Part shown: piece by piece, positions 35,578 to 59,289 of the stretch
How the letters are laid out: each line of letters opens with the position of its first letter
Position numbering within the stretch: the first letter of the stretch is position 1
DNA from: Ophelia neglecta
Lineage: Eukaryota
Assembly: GCA_965285935.1 (NCBI GenBank)
Contig: OZ260663.1
Coordinates: forward strand, 33,914,001-33,978,000
Length of the DNA stretch: 64,000 bases
Reading direction: 5' to 3'
Program-made: the position numbers and the translations under genes
The notes under the pieces: generated by a model
Seen by the model: the letters and a program-made list of their open reading frames with translations, nothing else
What the model was told of the DNA's origin: nothing
Database searches by the model: none

Positions 35578-38500
35578 TTAATGAACGAAGAATATTAAAT
35601 AAGAAAGAATACGATCCGGAATTTCAAACTTGAGCAGGAATTCTTTTAGATTTAGTTTGAATACAGAAAGTCTACAGTAGCAATCAAACAGACCAAATGC
35701 ATAGTTCCACAATTTAACACCTCTAAACTTTACTGATTTGTTAATAAATGATGATTTCCCCATTGGTACATGTAATTGGGATGACTGTCTTGTGTCATAT
35801 GAATGAACATCTCTATTATAAACAAACAATTCATCGAACAGCTTAGGCAAAATACCATTATAAAATTTATACATAAATAATATTACAAAATAAGTATATA
35901 TTTTAGACAAAGGGAGAATTTGCTGCTGATTAAATAAGAGGTCGGAGGGAGCATAGCGATTAGCTGAACAAACAATTCGAACAGCCCTTTTTTGTAGTTT
36001 AAACAAAGATGATAAAAGGGTTATGTTGGCAGAACCCCAAACCTCAATACAATATGTCAAATATGGATAGATCATAGTATAATACAGTGACAATATGGAA
36101 GTTTTGGCAAGTTTTTTTCTACATTTGCTGAGAATACCAATTCCCTTGGAGACTTTGGTCTTAATTAATTGAATGTGTTCTGCGTATCCAATTTACAGTC
36201 AATTATGACACCCAAAAGTTTTGTGCAGAAAACTTGTTGCAGGGGCTCACCACTAATACATAAATCAGGGAAAGTTAAACACTTAGACCAAAAATCATAA
36301 AGTGAGTTTTTTTAACATTCAACGATAATTTGTTGACCTTTAGCCAATCAACAAGTTTACCGAGTTCAATATTCATAGAATCGATTAAGGAGTTTAAACT
36401 TTTTCCATTTACAAAAACATTCGTGTCATCAGCAAATAACACTGGAAAAAGAACACTAGAAACGTTTACCATATCATTTATGTATAATAGAAATAATAGT
36501 GGGCCCAGAATAGACCCCTGTGGAACACCGCAGTTAATACTTTTTATATTCGAATCAGCATCGCTGAAACAGACAAACTGAGATCTGTTGTACAAATAGC
36601 TGCGAAACCAGTCCAATGCTACCCCTCTCACTCCATAAATGTATAGCTTCTGAAGAAGAATTTGGTGGTTAACTGTATCGAAAGCCTTGGAGAAATCCAA
36701 AAAGACACCTAGGACTAAATCACCACACTGAAGAGAATGGGCAATTTTGTCTAATAGAACGATCAAAGCAGCATTTGTTCCGTGTTTTTCCCTGAAGCCA
36801 AACTGATATTTGTATAATAAATTGTTTTCATTCACAAAATCAATAAGTCTAGAATACATCAGCTTCTCCAGGACTTTTGAGAAGAGGGGCAGAACAGAGA
36901 CAGGCCTATAATTATTTACAAACATTTTGTTACCACTTTTAAATAAAGGGATACATTTGGCTATTTTGAGCTCAGTTGGAACAACTCCTTGGCTCAGTGA
37001 TAAATTGAATAAATGTTCCAAAGGGCCCAGGAAAAGATTAAAAGTGAGTTTAACGATCCTTGCACATACACCATCCCAACCAGCACTAGATTCCTTGAGA
37101 GACAATATTATTTTTCGTAATTCATCACGTTCAACAGGACTAATAAACATTGAGTTGGGGTTGCTATCTCCCATATAATCGCTAGGACTATTTTGCCAAA
37201 GTTGATCCTATATTAACATAGAAATCATTAAATCCATTAGAAATGACTGTTTTGTCGCTCACAGTTTTACCGTTAATGATAAATTTGTCAGACATACTAG
37301 AGGTTCTCTTCTTGTTGATAACCTCCTTAATGACAAGCCAGGACTTTTTTAAATTATTTTTGTTTTTAATTAACAATTGATCGTAATGAAGTCTCTCCAT
37401 TTTACGAATTAAACTATCAAGTTTGCGTTGATGATCATAGTATACTTTTTTATTGTAAGGCGTAGGGCACCGCTGAAATCTTAGATGCAGTTTATTCTTT
37501 ATCTTGATTGAAACTTTGAGACCTTCGGTCAACCATGGTTTACGATTACGATAGTTAAGAGTTATTCTCTGAAGCGGAAAACAGGCATTATAACATTCAG
37601 AGAACTTTTCTTGAAAGGTAGCGTAAGCTGATTGACAATCATGTGAAGAGATAACAGAGTCCCAGGATACTGATTTCAGCCTTCTGGTGAAGGTGTCTAT
37701 GTTAGATTTGCTGTACACCCGCCTTAAAGCATAGGAAGGGCCATCGAGAAATTTCCGTGACATATCGAGTCAAAAAATGGGAAAGTGATCAGAGATCCCA
37801 GTGAACAAAATACCCTGAAACATATTGTTAGGACCCTGATGAAAGTTGTTACAAAAAATGTTATCAATAAGCGTAGCAGATTGTAAATTAACCCTGGTTG
37901 GCTTATTAATGAAGGGCAAAAAAGAGTGGGAGTACATAGCTTCCAAAAATTCAGATGAAGGGATATGCTTATCAACGTTAAGCAAGTTAATATTGAAGTC
38001 ACCAGTCAAATAGGCTATCTTATTTTCCTGTCGAATTTTTGCTAATATATCCTGTACATGGTTATTAAACAAGCTAAGATCTGTATTAGGAGGTCGATAC
38101 ACGACCCCAACTATAACATTTTTCCCTTTACAAAAAGAATCTTTTTGAACCTCAACAAATAAACTCTCAATATTCCCGTTATTGCAAATCAAATCAGCAC
38201 GAGTACTATATACAATGGAGTCGCGTAAATACAAAGATACGCCACCACCCACCTTACTGTCTCTACAAGTGAACTCATGATTATAACCCTCCATGTTGTA
38301 ATAAGCTGCAGTAGAATGTTTCAGCCAAGTCTCTGTTATTCCAAATGCCAAATTTAAAATCGAAGTTATCCAGGTATACAGAAAGCTTATCTAGATTCTT
38401 AGGGATGCTGCGTATGTTAATATGAATCAAAGAGAAACAATTAGGATCAACCTGCAATTGAGAGAGCTGCTGATTGAATGAATCTTCTAAATAGTAGTCA

Positions 38501-38886
38501 CTGATGCAACAGTTTTGATTTTCGTTAAAATATTGTATATCAGGGTCTGCATCAAAGAGAGGAGAATTCAAGTCATGTTCATTTATATCAAAGGGATTGA
38601 AACATTTATCTTCCAGGTCTCTGAGAGAGAGAGAAGTATCGATATTATAAGAATCCTTAATGGCAGCATAAAACTCGGTGTCATCAGAAACGTGGTTAAA
38701 AGGGAACAATGTTTCAGAACAGCAAATGCATATCCATTCCTGGTTATTTCTGTTTAAAACAATACTGTCCGTTTTTGAAACCATTGGCAAACAATGTACA
38801 TGATAATAGCCGCTGCATATGGAACATATGATGTGGCAAGAGTGAGATAACACACGTCTCTTACAACAATTACAATAACAAGTCAT
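35578..38886 (-). pseudogene. LINE ORF2 (PHD finger, apurinic endonuclease, reverse transcriptase), broken into five frames
   Basis: ORF-track pieces 38281-38886, 37770-38351, 37188-37763, 36275-37174 and 35578-36093 are collinear parts of one CR1 ORF2. Confidence 0.93.
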
Positions 38887-39588
38887 CGTACAAACGTGTG
38901 AAGTAATGACATACCTTCACATCCCACCGCTGGATCACACAAAATAGGACTAGAATGGAGCAGACATGGGTGATGAAAACGTGCAAAAAAGTATAAAATA
39001 TAAAAAAATAGAAATACATACAGTTGAATCTCTTGCAAAGCATGGTAGTGCAGCAGGACAAGACATAAATAAATTCACCACATAACTGACATTGTGTCCA
39101 ATGTATACGCGTTATGACTGGTCAAAGTTAACAAGGATACTTCAAGTACGGCAGTATACAAAGGCATGCCGAGCAAATAATTGTGCAAGACTGCCGCCCT
39201 TCAACAACACAACGCTAGTGTACAAGAGTCTCAAGCAAGGGTCAAGAACCATGTACAAACACACATAAACTCTACTTGCCTCCCACCGAATAACGCTATG
39301 CACAAGGTGACATATAATACCATCTGTATAGGTGTATGTGAGGAAATTAAGATACACGCGGATCCAACAGGGCCCATTAGGCGACAAATGTCTAAATTTC
39401 ATTAAAGCAGATACAAAGCAGATACAAGAGCATTTTATAATGATAAAAATTAAAGTGTAGGCAAATTAGGATACTCGTGAATCATACAGACCCAGTAGGT
39501 GACAAATGACCAAATTTCATTAAAGCAGAAACAAGGACAATTTATAATGATACAAAGTGTAGGCAACATAACCACGAGTAAACCAACC

Positions 39589-40279
39589 CTAAGCATTGCT
39601 GTATGAAGACGGCATCGTAGACTGCATGGTTTCAGCCGCGTTAGTTAGCCGAACGATCAGGGGCCTACCTGGGTCTTTTTTACTTTTGACGAAGACCTTG
39701 CCGTTATTAGCCCAGGCACCCTCGATAGCGGAATCCGGGTTGTCTATCATAGTCTGACGAAGATCTTTTAAGTTTTAAATTTTTCCTGGTGATGTCCTCG
39801 AATATAAGAATGCGAGGTGTCAGGTCCTTAAGAAACGTTGATCTATCCTTCAGAACATATAATTTTGTAGCGACTTTGATGAACTTACAAATTATAACCG
39901 GAGGGCAATTCCGATTTCTCTCCGAAGAGCTGCGGGGAAGTATATGTCCCACATCAATGTCCTCTTCGTGAACTTTCAACTTCATTGTGTCGTTGAAAAG
40001 GGTCAAGCACGCCTGGACACAGGATTGTTGCGGTTTAACAGCCAGGCCATGGATTCTCACGGAGCTCTTCCTGGTCCAACCCTCCAAGTCATTGAGGTCT
40101 GATTGCGTTTCCTGTAGGCCTGCCTCAAGCCTGGTTGTCCTATCAGATAAAGATAAAACCATCTGCTTCAGAGAAGCAATAGCATCAGAACTGCTTTTTT
40201 CCGTAGCCGTCACCCTGGCATCCATCGCTTCCATTTTATCCTGGATTAGAGATGCTATTGACTGTTGAAAAGAATCCAT
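39589..40279 (-). pseudogene. LINE ORF1 (coiled coil, RRM-like region, C-terminal domain) with one frameshift
   Basis: Coiled coil then LEGWTRKSSVRIHGL..DIDVGHIL..PPVIICKF..IFEDIT; a frameshift near 39770 continues as KDLRQ..AWANNGKVFVK to TAG at 39589. Confidence 0.85.
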
Positions 40280-52995: not shown

Positions 52996-55135
52996 CGGTA
53001 CGATCCGACAGCTTTCATGCTATTATTCGTGCTTTATTCCAAACATTTTGTTCACTATTGGATGAATAAGACGGATGTAATGATAAGACCACAATCCTAT
53101 TCACGACTTTTTGGAAGCAATTTCAAAAGGTAAGATGGGCAATGCTCAATTAATTACAATAATTCAATCACGGTAATTCCTACCTTACATGACCATTAAA
53201 CCCAGATCTGCATGATATTATATAAAACTATAAAACTGGGACTGTGGCGACCTATCCAACTTCTGTTTTTAAGTTTGAATGCTTATTTGCCCTACTTTGA
53301 CACACAATATTTGGAAAACTCTCCATCTTTGAAATTCGGTAGAAATATCCCAATAACAAAGTTAAATTGGGCCAATATTGTGAATTCCGTACCAATATCC
53401 CAATTAAGGAGTAGTGGGCCAGTATATGTCAATTTTTTTCGGGCATGATGTACATTAATGAGTTCCTTAGCGTCTTGATCAGTTAGCATATGTACGCATT
53501 TGGCCAATACTAGCCCAATTCCCACATTCAGTTTGCAATTGATGTGATTTACATACAAGTTAATCTAATTGGTTTTTGGTCACAAGACAATAATGGGGGA
53601 CTGGCTAGTTTGACGGCTTAATTTGGAGGGCTATTTTTTTATTCTCTTTGAAGTTAGAAGTAGCAATACATGCATTTAGGTGAGATTATAGGAGCATTGT
53701 CAATAATAGTTTTTCGCTTTGAATGTTTGCAAAAATATATTATATTTAAATAAAAAATATATATAAAAATATATATTTTAAGAAATTATTAAGCAATAAC
53801 TGCATTAAATGTCTAAAGCTCGAGGAAAAGTCTTAAGTTAGTCAATCTCTCAAAATAATGTGGATGGCTAGCCTTAGGTTATATGCACTTGAGTGCCACT
53901 CCTCAAAAGTGGCGAAACTTTTACTATTATTGGCCTATTTTAGCGGTAGAAAAATTATGTGCATGAAAACAGAGAACCTCTCAAGTATAGGATTTATCAA
54001 ATCCTAGTCACTAGAATTTGGCAGCCCACGCAATTGGCACAGATTCATGGAAAACATCAACTCCAATGACTGACTAAATTGCATATACTATTGACTTTGT
54101 ATTTCGACTCATGACCGGAAAGATAAAATTTCCGGCTTAATATGTTTTCGTATTAAATTTATATATAAGATACTAAATTCTAGATGGCTAAAGGCGAGCA
54201 GTAAGCGAATAAATCATCCAGTTACTTGATAGTTAATCCTACGTCCCGAATTAGAAAATTATCATTAAAATATGAAAGCATTCAACCCTAAAGACCTAAT
54301 GTGCCAGTGGTAAAATAAAACGTGTGACAACTTAATTGCATCAGCTCTGATAAAGCTTTTACCCCCAAATACTTCTACGTGTATTTTTGGGAAGTGTGAA
54401 TGGCGTAAAATCCAATTCATTCTCTTTCATACGTTTCCAAAGCAGTGTTGTTTGAAAACAAGTATGATATAAACTGCACAAAATGTGTATCAAGTCTAGC
54501 CTTTTATATTGATGGAAGTGAACACTGCAAGACACGTGTTTTCGTCATGAGTGATCATATACTTCCCGCTAATCAGGATTGGTGGTAATATATTTATATA
54601 TAGTCTTTGTAGTCCTGTCAGTTTATTACGACATCTCAAAAGGTATTTATTTATTATGGTCACAATTTGATATTTTCATTATATGAGCACTTTTTGGTAG
54701 TTTATTCATGCGCTTTTGTGGCTTTATTTTTGTGTAATGTATGTAATCTTCCACTTTCAAAATGAAAATTATTATTGAAACCCTTAAACCCACAACTATT
54801 GTGACCAAGCTCATGAAAATACACTATCCACACGAATAGTAAAATTACCGTTAGGGCTATTAGAAAGTTCACTGGCCGTGATCAATATATTCGAACATAG
54901 ATATTCGACGCTTACGCTTTCGTCAGATATTTTTATGGTTTAAATGCATAAATCTATAACGGCTTTTGACCTTCTTAGACTATAAAGTTACGTAACATTT
55001 TAAAAACGTATTTCTATATTAGCCGTCATGGAATATATATCTGGAATTAAGACCTGTTTCCTCAACACTTCTCTTTCCGTTGTTTAAATGCAAAGATAGT
55101 GAAATAAACTAGTAAGTAGAATTCAATATTCACAT

Positions 55136-55141
55136 TTTATT
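55136..55141 (-). terminator. Candidate polyadenylation signal of the minus-strand gene
   Basis: AATAAA on the minus strand ~415 nt after the stop codon; a second one lies ~40 nt closer to the stop. Confidence 0.4.
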
Positions 55142-55556
55142 GACAAGCTTTAAGGAAATCACATGGATACATAAAATTTATTGATGATAGATTGTCGTCG
55201 TTTTATCTAAATGCAAATGAACCAATTAATTATAGTCAAACTAGTCAGGTTACAAAAGTTAATGGCGCAAAGATTGATATATCACAAAGATCATTTATAA
55301 CATTTTCTAGTGTTTGGTCGATAATTATCCCGAATAGTTAAATTAGCAGAGCAATTCACACAAAAAATAATTAATATATTACGAATACATTGAGTGACCG
55401 AATAATTAACTTGCGGCAATTAGTACTTGTTATTTGAATGTGGTTATATTCAAACAAATCTACGGGAATGCGGTGGCACAATTTGGAAAGACTTTAAAAT
55501 TAAGCGGCACAAGGAATATAATATAAGGAAAAGCCTGTATCAATAATCAATATGTT

Positions 55557-57609
55557 TTAGTTGCAAGTTTGGTCTTCAATGTAGGCGACGACCAAGGCGT
55601 GTGATCCAGCCCTAGCGTATCTAGCGGGGTCGTCATCACAGTTGTTGGTCGACTCCTTGATGCATTGCTCGTATACAGCAAGACTCTCGCAGGGGTCAAT
55701 GCTGTCGTGGAGATCACTGAGAAACATGATATCACAGTCAACAATCGCCAGCTTGCTACAAGCCAGGGCACTGTACTTTCCCACTGAAGCTAAAACAAAG
55801 TCAAATGGCTGTATACAACGAATAGTAAAGTAATAACTTCTCATCCCGGACACGTTCACTAATAAGTCAAGCTAGCCTATTAGAAATAAACTAGTGTTAT
55901 ATGAGTAAATTTTTTTCGCATTCTGTCAACCAAGGTCTTAGCGACAACATACGTTTTATTGCAGTACACAAACATGATGTATAGGTATTATACTTTCGTT
56001 GGTACTACATCGATTACAATCAATCGATACTGATATCGATGACGTTTTTTATATCTACATTTTCAATTTAAATGGTAGATATGTACCTTGTCCAAGAGCG
56101 CTGATGTCAACATTAGGGCAGATGTTGTCATTTTTCCCGCTAGCTACCATATCAATCAGGGCGTGTTTAAATGATGTCATGATCTGTAGGTCACAGATCG
56201 TATCCTCTGCCAAGCAGTCAACATATTCCTTTGAAAATGAACAACGTAGCTCAATGTAACATAATAGATAATGATATTTCTAGGGTAGTCTATTTGCATT
56301 CAGGATCAGGGTACTGTCTTTAATTCCAATTTACATAATGTATTTACATTTGATAATAATTTAAGCATATTTTACCTTGTTCTTCTTTTACAAAATAAAA
56401 TGTTGTATACCTGGAAAGCGCCACACATGCTAGTTTCGTCGGTGTCACGTGTCCGAGTGTACACCAAGAATCGTAGGCCACATTTTTTCAACGTGGCATG
56501 GTAGCAAGTATCGGAATCTGCTCAAATGCAATAACACATATAACTATTATCAGAATCACACTGGATTTATGTATAAATAACAGGGTTTAATATATAAATA
56601 CAGACAAAACGAAATGAAACAACTATGTGTTTGTTTCTTGCCTTTTAAATCATATAATCTTCTATCTCAATATACAATTATAACAGTGCCAATAATACTT
56701 GAAAGCAATATGTATTTATTTCTACAACCATAAAAGAAATGCAAATTCAACTTCAAAATATATTTCGCAGACTGAAGTTGTTCATACATCCAGTAAACTA
56801 GTATACTTAAATTACAAAAAAGCTGGATACCATTAGCTAAAATTGAATTAATAGTCAATTTAGGGCTGTACCTTTTGTGTCAAATCGAACATGTTGAATT
56901 TCATTCAAGGTGAGTACGCCGTTACCTGACATGGAAAAACCAAACCTTAATTTATTCAAACCAATACATAATCGAAATGTCATATATATATTGTATAATC
57001 CTAATAAGACTTGTACTTTTCTGATAATAAGACACCGTGCTACTCACCGTCAATGTCCATCTGCTGGAGTTTTGCCTGTGCGGTCCTGGATGGTAGGAAC
57101 ATACACTTGCGCAGCTCCGTGAAGGAAATAGACGAGCTCTGGTCTACATCGCAAAGGCGCAAGAGTACTTGTGCATCGGGGTTGGCATCAGCAGAGCGGC
57201 GTCTGTGGAACAGAGAGAGATATAACATTATGATTTTATCGTAATATTATAACAATTAACATCTCGTTGAAGTGTGCACGTAGTTATTACATGGTAAACT
57301 TGAGTGTATAATTCGAATATTGTAAATACTGTGACAGCAAGGGCCTAGTATACTATACTACACATATTTATAATACCGTCTAAAAAAAAATAGCCACGTA
57401 TTCTTGAAATCAATGCCAAAGCAATGTCAATTTAACTGTTGCTTTGATCGTTGCACTACTCACTTCCTAAAGTTCCATGTAGCTCGGTAACCGGGCCCGC
57501 CATTCCATGTCGGACCATGACTGTCTGGTTTCCGGCAAGCGCTGCCGTAATCAATTGCAGCCAGAACTATGGTAGCAAGGAGCAGAAGACACGGGCGATG
57601 GATCTCCAT
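55557..57609 (-). CDS. Secreted precursor: signal peptide, 23-aa Gly/Trp-rich peptide, RKRR furin site, EF-hand pair, two 6-Cys helical repeats (DUF19/CPG4-like), ~278 aa
   Basis: Minus-strand GT-AG exons 57609-57464 (MEIHRPCLLLLATIVLAAIDYGSACRKPDSHGPTWNGGPGYRATWNFR), 57202-57048 (KRRSAD..CDVDQSSSISFTEL..MDID), 56925-56872 (GNGVLTLNEIQ), 56517-56411, 56228-56087, 55789-55557 (..EDQTCN*). Sum 837 nt, phases 2,1,1,0,1 consistent; the second EF loop DIDGNGVLTLNE forms only after splicing. Confidence 0.88.
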
Positions 57610-57746
57610 ATCTGAAAGAATCTGCATGTTAATACGAATCACTAACACACCATGTCTTTCAAGGAAAAGTATTATCAGTATTAATGATTATCTATGCTTT
57701 TCTTTGCCATTGTAATGTTCAGTTTTGAAATTTAGTCTAAACTTAC

Positions 57747-57844
57747 CTTTACGAGTCCAAATTTCCGTTCAAACAAAAATGGGTTTATCTGGGTTTTAAC
57801 TGATCCAAGTTTGAAGCTGACAACGACACGACTTCTCTTTTATA
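57747..57844 (-). promoter_or_regulatory. TATA box and non-coding first exon of the secreted-precursor gene
   Basis: Minus-strand TATAAAAG at 57844-57837, Inr-like TCAAACT ~57812, strong donor AAAG|GTAAGT at 57747; next acceptor TTCTTTCAG opens the exon at 57611, two bases before the ATG. Confidence 0.7.
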
Positions 57845-57911
57845 AGCAACGCTCTCGGCTATCTATACCATGACTATCGCTGACAGCCAATGGCGTTTAG
57901 CGGGCGTAAAC

Positions 57912-58056
57912 GGGAAATTCTTAGAATGCGTAAGGGTCCGCATTCTTGTGGTTTTCAAAGTTTATTCCATCATGCTGTAGACATAATTGAGACTTTTATG
58001 GTCAGTAAAGCCAGAAGGAACCAGGAACCGTTAACATGCTGTGGCAGGGGATTTTT
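57912..58056. promoter_or_regulatory. Two NF-kappaB/Rel-like motifs upstream of the secreted-precursor gene
   Basis: GGGAAATTCT at 57912-57921 and GGGGATTTTT at 58047-58056, within ~250 bp of the inferred TSS; motif match only. Confidence 0.4.
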
Positions 58057-59289
58057 TGATTAGATATGTTGGAAATAAGACTAGGAAGGGGTCTTAAAAT
58101 TGCAATACTGCTTTGAAAAGTATCAACGGTGTAGGCAGGTTAGTTTAAGATACAGAATCATGAACAGTTTATAAAAACAAAAAAAAATATTAACTGTCAG
58201 GATTAAAATAGTGTAGTCATATTATTCCAGCTGGTTAATACATTGCAGTAAACTTTGCCGATTTTCGAAATCATGATTTACACCAAGGTAATCAATTTTG
58301 GATGGAAGATGGCTTAGAATTGATTTAATTTTCAGACTCTTTAAGAATTTTTTTTACAAATTAACAGCATAGTACACATTAAAAATATAAAACATAGTGC
58401 CAATTGCAATAAGATTAACAGTCATGTCTTTTTCCACGCCACCTTGCGGACACACTTTCTCTCTCCCACGCACCACATCACCCGTGAAATATAAACCATA
58501 AAAAGAACGATTACAAATTCATGGCTACAAAGACAATCATTTACGACTTCATCGCTTCTTTGTAAAATGGTTATTGGTTATTTTTCTTATATCACCAGTT
58601 GGGTGCTTACATAAGCTTCATAAAAGTTCATATTGGTGCCATTAAGGAACCAGAAAATTTGAGTTGCTACGTCGTCTATGAAATTCCTGGACTCGTTGCG
58701 CTTTCTTTCATCATGACAGGAACTGGATCATTACTCCGTGTGAAAGTGATATAAGTACTTTCATTAAATAGGCTCTACGCTCAGAGCGGGGTTGTAAACC
58801 AGGTTTCTGAACAAAGGTTTTTCATTACTGCAGTAACCCAATATTGTTAAATATAAGTCGAAAAGTGGCTGAACGACAGCAATGTATGCTTTCAACAAGG
58901 AAATGGGGGCCAACTTTTTGCCAAGACGGCCCAGCAAAGCCATCTATCTATTTTGAATCTTTAACATTAGACGTTATACACCGTGTTTTGTTTCCTGTCT
59001 TCATCGTGCAAGAATACTAGAATTCAACGTTAAATGATCGTCACCGAACCACTTACTACTCCCTCAATATCGGTTTGGAGAAAATCCTAAATAGAATGGC
59101 CGCCTATATCGTCGGCAAATATTTTACAAAATGTGTCTCTCAATGCAGTTGTGTAATAAACCTAAATGTCTGCTGATAATGGCCTTGTCGCAGAGACCCT
59201 CGTTAATGCTGTTTGTCATGCAATCGTGTAACTGAAGAGCATAGCAGCATAATTTTAAGATTTTTCACCATTTGTTCATTGAATAGGCA

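Follow-up and report, generated by a model that had tools for sequence, protein, structure and literature searches.

In the vasopressin/oxytocin-neurophysin precursors, a short peptide that begins with Cys comes directly behind the signal peptide, and a basic site separates it from a 14-Cys carrier made of two homologous halves. The neurophysin carrier has a beta-rich fold and no EF-hands, and the hormone, a cyclic nonapeptide with an amidation signal, is strongly conserved. In mussel mytimycin, a peptide of 54 residues and 12 Cys is followed by a 75-residue extension that contains a single EF-hand and has nothing after it (PMC8004829). As outlined in PMC8398477, the secreted precursor encoded by the Helix HCS2 gene unites short PRXamide peptides, located right behind the signal peptide, with an EF-hand region. 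Nucleobindin-2/nesfatin, as cited in PMC8398477 and PMC5627052, is a secreted EF-hand protein with a convertase-cut N-terminal bioactive fragment. Going by the titles of PDB entries 4UHY, 4UHZ, 4UI2 and 6Z3M, the N-domain of RGMs is the part that binds BMPs. Here we analysed a stretch of 64,000 nucleotides of the Ophelia neglecta genome (GCA_965285935.1, contig OZ260663.1, positions 33,914,001 to 33,978,000; hereafter the window) and a gene located on its minus strand at 55557-57609. We propose, with moderate confidence, that this gene encodes a pro-protein made of a diversifying peptide and an acidic Ca-binding carrier; processing by a convertase would free the peptide, most likely for a role in host defence.

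Results

Structure of the gene

The window gene, hereafter A1, consists of six coding exons and five introns that together keep a single frame of 837 nt (278 codons and a stop), with the ATG and the stop codon at the exact ends of 55557-57609. Our reading of the sequence and of the open reading frame (ORF) listing over 55000-58200 showed that all five introns start with GT and end with AG, and that their phases fit. Coding exon 1 (57464-57609), which ends at the donor GTGAGT, carries the signal peptide, the variable peptide and the start of a basic site. The signal peptide spans 24 codons (57538-57609) and has a hydrophobic core, small residues at -3 and -1, and the ending G-S-A before Cys; by the -3/-1 rule, cleavage is predicted directly before Cys25. 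The variable peptide follows over 23 codons, from Cys25 to Phe47 (57469-57537), with a net charge of about +2 and one unpaired Cys. The basic site R-K-R-R extends across intron 1 (57196-57468), with the first Arg at 57466-57468, the Lys at 57464-57465 and 57202, and the Arg-Arg pair at 57196-57201. Exon 1 ends with ...TTT AGG AA and exon 2 starts with A CGC CGC TCT, giving F-R-K-R-R-S. Because intron 1 splits the Lys codon, RKRR is present only in the spliced message.

Downstream, coding exon 2 (57048-57202) supplies the remainder of the basic site, EF-hand 1 and the first part of EF loop 2, and coding exon 3 (56872-56925) supplies the remainder of EF loop 2 and its exiting helix. Two domains with six Cys each (Cys6) come next. 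The first and second halves of domain 1, each with three Cys, are encoded by exon 4 (56411-56517) and exon 5 (56087-56228), respectively, and exon 6 (55557-55789) encodes domain 2, an RGM_N-like three-helix bundle, together with the stop codon. The C-terminus, ...QTCN, comes directly after domain 2. The initial annotation of this stretch had described a spliced product with a signal peptide, RKRR, two EF loops and two Cys6 repeats, and all of these elements are present on the minus strand; its view of a modular secreted precursor, in which a convertase site separates a short peptide from the EF-hand/Cys part, is likewise supported by the sequence architecture.

Only three public runs contain the locus. 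All are DNA; their contigs run through introns as well as exons, and no splice joints occur in them. The splicing of the six exons is predicted from eight intact paralogs, from collinearity with annotated proteins and from common intron positions, and on these grounds the six-exon gene model for a putative secreted protein is real. In the DNA runs, many single-base differences were observed in the introns. Furthermore, one contig form found in all three runs omits 81 bases of intron 2 (window 56959-57039), ending 8 nt before the exon-2 donor, which is probably an intronic length variant or a paralog-derived form.

Divergence of the peptide among paralogs

The genome (762 Mb, in which the window is C5:33.914-33.978 Mb) contains eight further intact copies with a matching exon set, hence nine copies in two clusters on C5. 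In cluster A, A2 and A3 lie 22 and 38 kb from A1. Cluster B, at C5:28.07-28.115 Mb, comprises B1-B6 and apparently arose by block duplication of three genes. All nine paralogs keep a basic cleavage site and the Cys behind the signal peptide. The sites read RKRR, RERR, RKRR, RGRR (two copies) and KR (four copies); five copies carry the furin consensus and the other four plain K-R.

The stretch between this Cys and the basic site varies widely. Like the 23-residue A1 peptide (net about +2), the A2 peptide has 23 residues, with eight replacements toward Arg/His, a net charge of about +6 and three Trp, and the A3 peptide has a net charge of about -1. The peptides of B1 and B4 have 7-9 residues before R-G-R-R, and those of B2, B3 and B6 are a hydrophobic 10-mer before K-R. 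Among the members, including those of other animals described below, peptide length ranges from 7 to 58 residues and net charge from about -1 to +11.

We observed that the variable peptide is the fastest-evolving part of the gene. The signal peptides of A1 and A2 are identical at 24 of 24 residues, and their peptides differ at 8 of 23. At the nucleotide level, this pair differs at 1/72 positions in the signal, 11/74 in the peptide region and 63/1211 in the introns (binomial P = 0.0015). B1 and B4 differ at 0/72 positions in the signal and at 7/32 in the peptide region, which also contains a 3-nt indel, compared with 3.9% in the introns (P = 0.0002). The corresponding values for B3 and B6, to which no test was applied, are 1/72, 0/35 and 2.9%. 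The peptide changed at 3-6 times the intron rate in two of the three recent duplicate pairs (A1/A2 and B1/B4).

The proportion of non-synonymous differences (pN) in the A1/A2 peptide is 0.162 versus 0.061 for synonymous ones (pS), and 9 of the 10 changes in whole codons are non-synonymous; the changes are separate point substitutions. In the rest of the protein (exons 2-6), pN is 0.011 versus 0.034 for pS, a pN/pS ratio of about 0.33, and divergence is 1.6% compared with 5.2% in the introns. Since exons 2-6 diverged less than the introns and pN is lower than pS, these exons are under purifying selection. In the peptide, change above the neutral rate in two independent pairs favors episodic diversifying selection over a mere lack of constraint.

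Homologs in other animals

Queries were separate exons or natural full-length homologs, with domain 1 of the window (exons 4 and 5) and EF loop 2 judged piecewise or via homologs. Searched exhaustively by phmmer, exon 6 found 11 matches among 1.8 billion representatives. The true ones are full-length proteins of 276-337 residues from Owenia fusiformis (annelid, three genes) and Ptychodera flava (hemichordate), together with one UniParc entry of unknown origin. TPR and ankyrin proteins in the list were rejected as helical-repeat noise. Word-indexed searches with a homolog, a 5-sequence profile and a 28-row profile gained only Saccoglossus, represented by one truncated member, the remainder being bacterial EF-hand noise. 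All named database members are called 'uncharacterized' or 'EF-hand domain-containing'.

All EF-bearing members have a common layout, in which a signal peptide, its predicted cleavage point marked by a Cys, precedes a variable stretch; a basic site then leads into an EF-hand pair and two Cys6 domains. No EF-bearing member seen lacks this Cys. The variable stretch of Ptychodera is an acidic 58-mer, and the basic sites of the annelid and hemichordate homologs read RRRR, HKR, RARR, RQRR and RYRR. Every window exon is collinear with the annotated full-length proteins of Owenia and Ptychodera. Similarity is higher to the annelid, with identities of 32-39% in exon 6 and 37% in exon 4 to Owenia P0004, than to the hemichordate, with about 29%. 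Furthermore, three intron positions are common to the window, Owenia and Ptychodera genes: just before the basic site, after ...LQ in domain 1 (LQ|EY, at the end of exon 4) and between the domains. By these shared positions, exon 1, with the signal and the variable peptide, is an old, discrete module. The predicted spliced model is backed by independent annotations in two other phyla, and the gene belongs to an old, undescribed bilaterian family of putatively secreted pro-proteins that extends from spiralians to hemichordates.

The initial annotation had looked to paralogs for a variable peptide beside conserved EF-hand and Cys parts, and this is what the paralogs contain; it had also made its proposal depend on homologs, which retain the basic site, and on the joining of the EF-hand and Cys exons, which the annotated orthologs do join. 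Its furin consensus applies to some copies, including that of the window, and gives way to plain K-R in four paralogs. The mildly cationic Gly/Trp peptide that it described is a fair account of the window copy and does not extend to the sister copies, whose peptides run from 7-residue acidic to net +11 Arg-rich.

Two further relatives were found outside the named proteins. P0010, from the intronless and transcript-like Logan contig ERR14707600_75881 (1380 nt), is an EF-less secreted protein of 235 residues in which the basic site RRR is followed by two RGM_N-like Cys6 domains; it is an EF-less branch of the RGM_N-like Cys6 domain family. The second relative lies on contig ctg17461 (21.5 kb) of ENA assembly ERZ25069296, and its last exon is 63% identical. 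There it is repeated head to tail every 4.3 kb, in at least 5 identical copies. Behind the signal peptide, its exon 1 encodes an Arg-rich 21-mer that starts with Cys, has a net charge of +11 and contains several R-x-x-R motifs.

EF-hand pair and acidic carrier

EF loop 1, DVDQSSSISFTE, is located at 57115-57150 within exon 2. EF loop 2, DIDG/NGVLTLNE, is interrupted by intron 2, with its first four positions in exon 2 (57048-57057) and the rest in exon 3 (56900-56925). By eye, both loops have the canonical ligands at positions 1, 3, 5 and 12 (D-x-D-x-S...E and D-x-D-x-N-G...E). Exon 2 alone matched Pfam EF-hand_1 with an E value of 0.0034, which is under the cut-off because the EF pair is split by the intron; exon 3, with 17 residues, is too short for Pfam. 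Full-length homologs exceed the cut-off of Pfam EF-hand_7. In the AlphaFold2 (AF2) model of full-length Owenia P0004, the first 71 residues are disordered and are followed by a standard EF-hand pair, then by three helices and another three helices.

The carrier is acidic, with about 225 residues and a net charge near -15, and would bind Ca2+. There are 14 Cys after the basic site, two in the EF part and six per bundle. Both EF-part Cys are missing in hemichordates, which suggests that the two pair with each other. Such pairing would leave the Cys that starts the peptide unpaired, and this residue may form an intermolecular disulfide or be modified.

Relation of the Cys6 domains to RGM_N

Both Cys6 units (exons 4 and 5, and exon 6) have six Cys with equal spacing. 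An alignment of domains 1 and 2 of all members placed these Cys in register, so the two domains are genuine tandem duplicates. Pfam RGM_N (PF06535) matched Owenia P0008 with 33.9 bits, compared to a cut-off of 24.2, Ptychodera with 21.6 bits and paralog B4 with 17.1 bits. As isolated domains, 8 of 16 matched RGM_N at E ≤ 1 (best, 1.9e-5). Exon 6 of the window had no Pfam match and stayed below every Pfam threshold, and we therefore use the label 'RGM_N-like, remote'.

A profile of the 16 domains searched against the PDB gave the N-domains of RGMB, RGMC and RGMA as its top five matches (E 0.006-0.13). AF2 modelling of exon 6 with the 16-domain alignment produced a three-helix bundle (helices 12-27, 32-47 and 53-71) with a predicted local distance difference test (pLDDT) score of 92.7. 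In a Foldseek search with this model, ranks 1-10 were all RGM N-domains in BMP2 or GDF5 complexes, with probabilities of at most 0.93 and template modelling (TM) scores of 0.52-0.60. VIA-align also placed RGM N-domains on top, with about 60 residues aligned at about 20% identity and Z scores of 6.0-6.8; three-helix bundles are common, and a VIA Z score below 8 is by itself little proof. In the ESM Atlas, a search by features returned only EF-hand clusters of a generic kind and weak, unnamed clusters from arthropods, none of which reached 0.9. A search by shape returned helical bundles of a generic kind, and an RGM cluster stood at row 10. For a small helical domain, each of these lines of evidence is weak, yet they are mutually consistent, suggesting that the Cys6 domains are remote relatives of the RGM_N three-helix bundle. 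The predicted complex of the exon-6 domain with two copies of the genome's BMP2/4-type mature domain scored 0.00, which gives no verdict either way.

Pfam searches of the homologs found no RGM_C, and RGM_C loci occur in the genome only on C8 and C1. The former is a bona fide RGM gene (C8:29954931-29960002, minus strand) in which RGM_N (35.2 bits) adjoins RGM_C (88 and 170 bits), and the latter is a lone RGM_C-like exon (C1:55436787-55436951). A1 was considered as an RGM itself and rejected, as its product lacks RGM_C and a glycosylphosphatidylinositol (GPI) tail and the true RGM gene is on C8.

Upstream region and other features

Alignment of the upstream regions of A1-A3 revealed several conserved elements on the gene strand. 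An invariant CCAAT-box-like element, CCATTGG, lies at 57887-57893 and a TATA-like box, CTTATAAAA, at 57838-57846; promoter roles for both are presumed. The TATA-like box is kept in all three genes, and A3 retained it even though its flanks are otherwise about 35% diverged. A probable non-coding leader exon (57747-57815) ends at the AAAG|GTAAGT donor that is invariant in A1-A3; its 5' end is an estimate placed about 25-30 nt past the TATA box. A probable GT...AG intron of 135 nt in the 5' untranslated region (5'UTR) follows at 57612-57746, with donor and acceptor kept in A1-A3 and the acceptor 2 nt before the ATG. The conservation of the boxes, donor and acceptor suggests that the ATG is preceded by such a short leader exon and intron.

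Elsewhere in the window, a retrotransposon without long terminal repeats (non-LTR) occupies 35578-40279 on the minus strand. Its frame is split into several ORFs, which encode an apurinic/apyrimidinic (AP)-type endonuclease (Exo_endo_phos, 37770-38351) and a reverse transcriptase (RVT_1, 36275-37174). On C1, at about 128.52-128.68 Mb, we observed about 30 near-identical TGF-beta-family mature-domain ORFs of 113.6 bits each, in frames of about 343 aa. With a spacing of almost exactly 5.0 kb and with blocks in either orientation, they form a large tandem array of one ligand gene.

Discussion

According to the reading that we favor, signal cleavage would expose an N-terminal Cys on the peptide, and a furin or prohormone-type convertase would cut after the basic site. 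This cut would free a 23-residue peptide, whose single unpaired Cys could allow a dimer or a modification, from an acidic, Ca2+-binding carrier of about 225 residues. The peptide would act on fast-changing outside targets, host defence being the likeliest class, and the carrier, possibly with a ligand-binding role of its own, would accompany the peptide through the secretory pathway or neutralise it there. Fast-changing outside targets seem most likely because the peptide diversifies while the signal, the site and the carrier stay fixed. The basic site lies after the signal peptide, in a region for which the Owenia P0004 model predicts disorder, and RKRR matches the furin-type R-X-(K/R)-R in a putatively secreted, predicted accessible segment. 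A fixed signal, site and acidic carrier combined in tandem genes with a diversifying, sometimes strongly cationic peptide make up the pattern of host-defence peptide genes. The Arg/His/Trp-rich peptide of A2 and the net +11 peptide encoded in tandem copies by the ctg17461 relative support a role in defence.

Several observations weigh against this proposal. The third recent pair, B3/B6, is without peptide change, the peptides of the two closest Owenia copies are no more different than the rest of these proteins, and in the older pair A1/A3 the peptide diverged at about the intron rate, which is compatible with a mere lack of constraint. Substitutions clustered in such short regions could also result from a local mutational event. 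Moreover, the peptides of some members are neutral, acidic or only 7-10 residues long, as in the B-cluster copies and the acidic 58-residue stretch of Ptychodera; a cationic antimicrobial mode thus cannot be the function of the whole predicted family. For the window gene product we infer splicing, secretion and cleavage alike, and the strongly conserved carrier may be the main functional product.

This last point leads to the best-surviving alternative, which we consider possible and clearly less probable than the release of a diversifying peptide. The EF-hand pair and the two RGM_N-like domains would form the functional product, a secreted Ca2+-dependent binder, possibly of a BMP/GDF-type ligand, and the N-terminal stretch would be a removable pro-segment or linker. 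Purifying selection on this module and its retention from spiralians to hemichordates agree with such a role, as do the lack of a conserved length, charge or motif in the N-terminal peptide, its disorder in the Owenia P0004 model, the A1/A3 peptide divergence at about the intron level, and the two domains that EF-less P0010 retains after its basic site. The BMP-binding function of the RGM N-domain, as given in the PDB titles, would suit it too. However, neutral drift does not account for two independent pairs in which the peptide changed at 3-6 times the intron rate. The link to RGM_N is also remote, with no Pfam match for the window exon 6, and binding of a BMP/GDF-type ligand is a proposal only.

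A neuropeptide or hormone precursor of the peptide-plus-carrier type, in which the peptide would act on a receptor and the Cys-rich carrier would serve in packaging, appears unlikely. The position of the peptide directly behind the signal peptide and ahead of a basic or dibasic site would fit, and the two homologous disulfide-rich halves of the carrier recall neurophysin. An EF-hand region is on record in a molluscan neuropeptide gene (Bogdanov et al. 1998, as cited in PMC8398477). However, the peptides are not conserved even among recent duplicates, the window peptide has neither an amidation Gly before the basic site nor a PRX motif, and nine divergent copies would be unusual for a receptor-matched ligand. 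EF-hand and Cys domains are both missing from the scallop pleurin precursor (supplement of PMC5996578).

We regard as improbable an ancient bilaterian peptide-carrier system in which the invariant Cys, exposed by removal of the signal peptide, would be N-acylated (cf. Hedgehog, Spitz) or joined into a disulfide dimer, a convertase would free the short peptide from a Ca2+-loaded carrier, and the RGM_N-like bundles of this carrier would bind a BMP/GDF-type ligand, such that one gene would provide both a diversifying effector and a conserved modulator of growth-factor signalling. Finally, a chance assembly of ORFs or a dead gene copy, which the restriction of the public runs to DNA might suggest, can be dismissed as highly implausible given five GT-AG introns that keep the frame, nine intact copies, purifying selection on exons versus introns, conserved promoter and leader-exon signals, and annotated orthologs with common intron positions in two other phyla.

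A conserved signal, a diversifying peptide, a fixed site and a conserved carrier form a design that is typical of antimicrobial peptides, toxins, some hormones and similar effector systems. Should the peptides prove active, the family would be a new source of short defence or signalling peptides, and would offer a handle on why the mytimycin and HCS2 precursors carry Ca-binding modules. Should the activity reside in the carrier instead, the family would be the first case in which the BMP-binding fold of the RGM N-domain is used outside RGMs.

Comparison with known systems

The window protein, like neurophysin, has 14 Cys after the cleavage site, a likeness that is an analogy of layout only. 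Nucleobindin shows no sequence match; it lacks Cys-rich domains, and its fragment of about 80 residues is conserved. Pleurins, which are conserved across molluscs, end in -(Y/F)PRX-amide, whereas the window peptide ends in ...T-W-N-F before RKRR. Pleurin/HCS2 was rejected as the true family in view of the lack of a PRX-Gly motif in the window peptide and of EF-hand and Cys domains in the scallop pleurin precursor (PMC5996578), HCS2 being compared by its description.

Mytimycin shares with the window gene a signal peptide, a peptide, a dibasic site and an acidic EF-hand extension, and is multi-copy and variable (PMC8004829). In contrast, the window peptide has 23 residues and one Cys, and its extension consists of an EF-hand pair and two RGM_N-like domains. 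Membership in mytimycin was rejected on the basis of the published description (PMC8004829). The comparison with mytimycin drawn in the initial annotation is therefore factually right and holds as an analogy, not as membership.

The best match of the Cys6 domains in both profile and fold is the N-domain of RGMA/B/C; both are small disulfide-locked three-helix bundles with the pattern C-x8-C-x7-C-x(about 26)-C. Unlike in RGMs, the domain occurs here twice in tandem behind an EF-hand pair, without RGM_C/partial vWD, the GDPH autocleavage site or the GPI-anchor tail. A literature search found no paper combining RGM_N with an EF-hand, and no described family matches the protein over its whole length, a match on which the initial annotation would have given up its proposal. 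Its authoring model had not recognised the domain combination; the combination is indeed undescribed, with the qualification that the Cys6 domains resemble remote RGM_N three-helix bundles. From its sequence, the window gene thus encodes a putative peptide-plus-carrier precursor that joins known domain types in an undescribed combination and stands outside the mytimycin, pleurin and RGM families.

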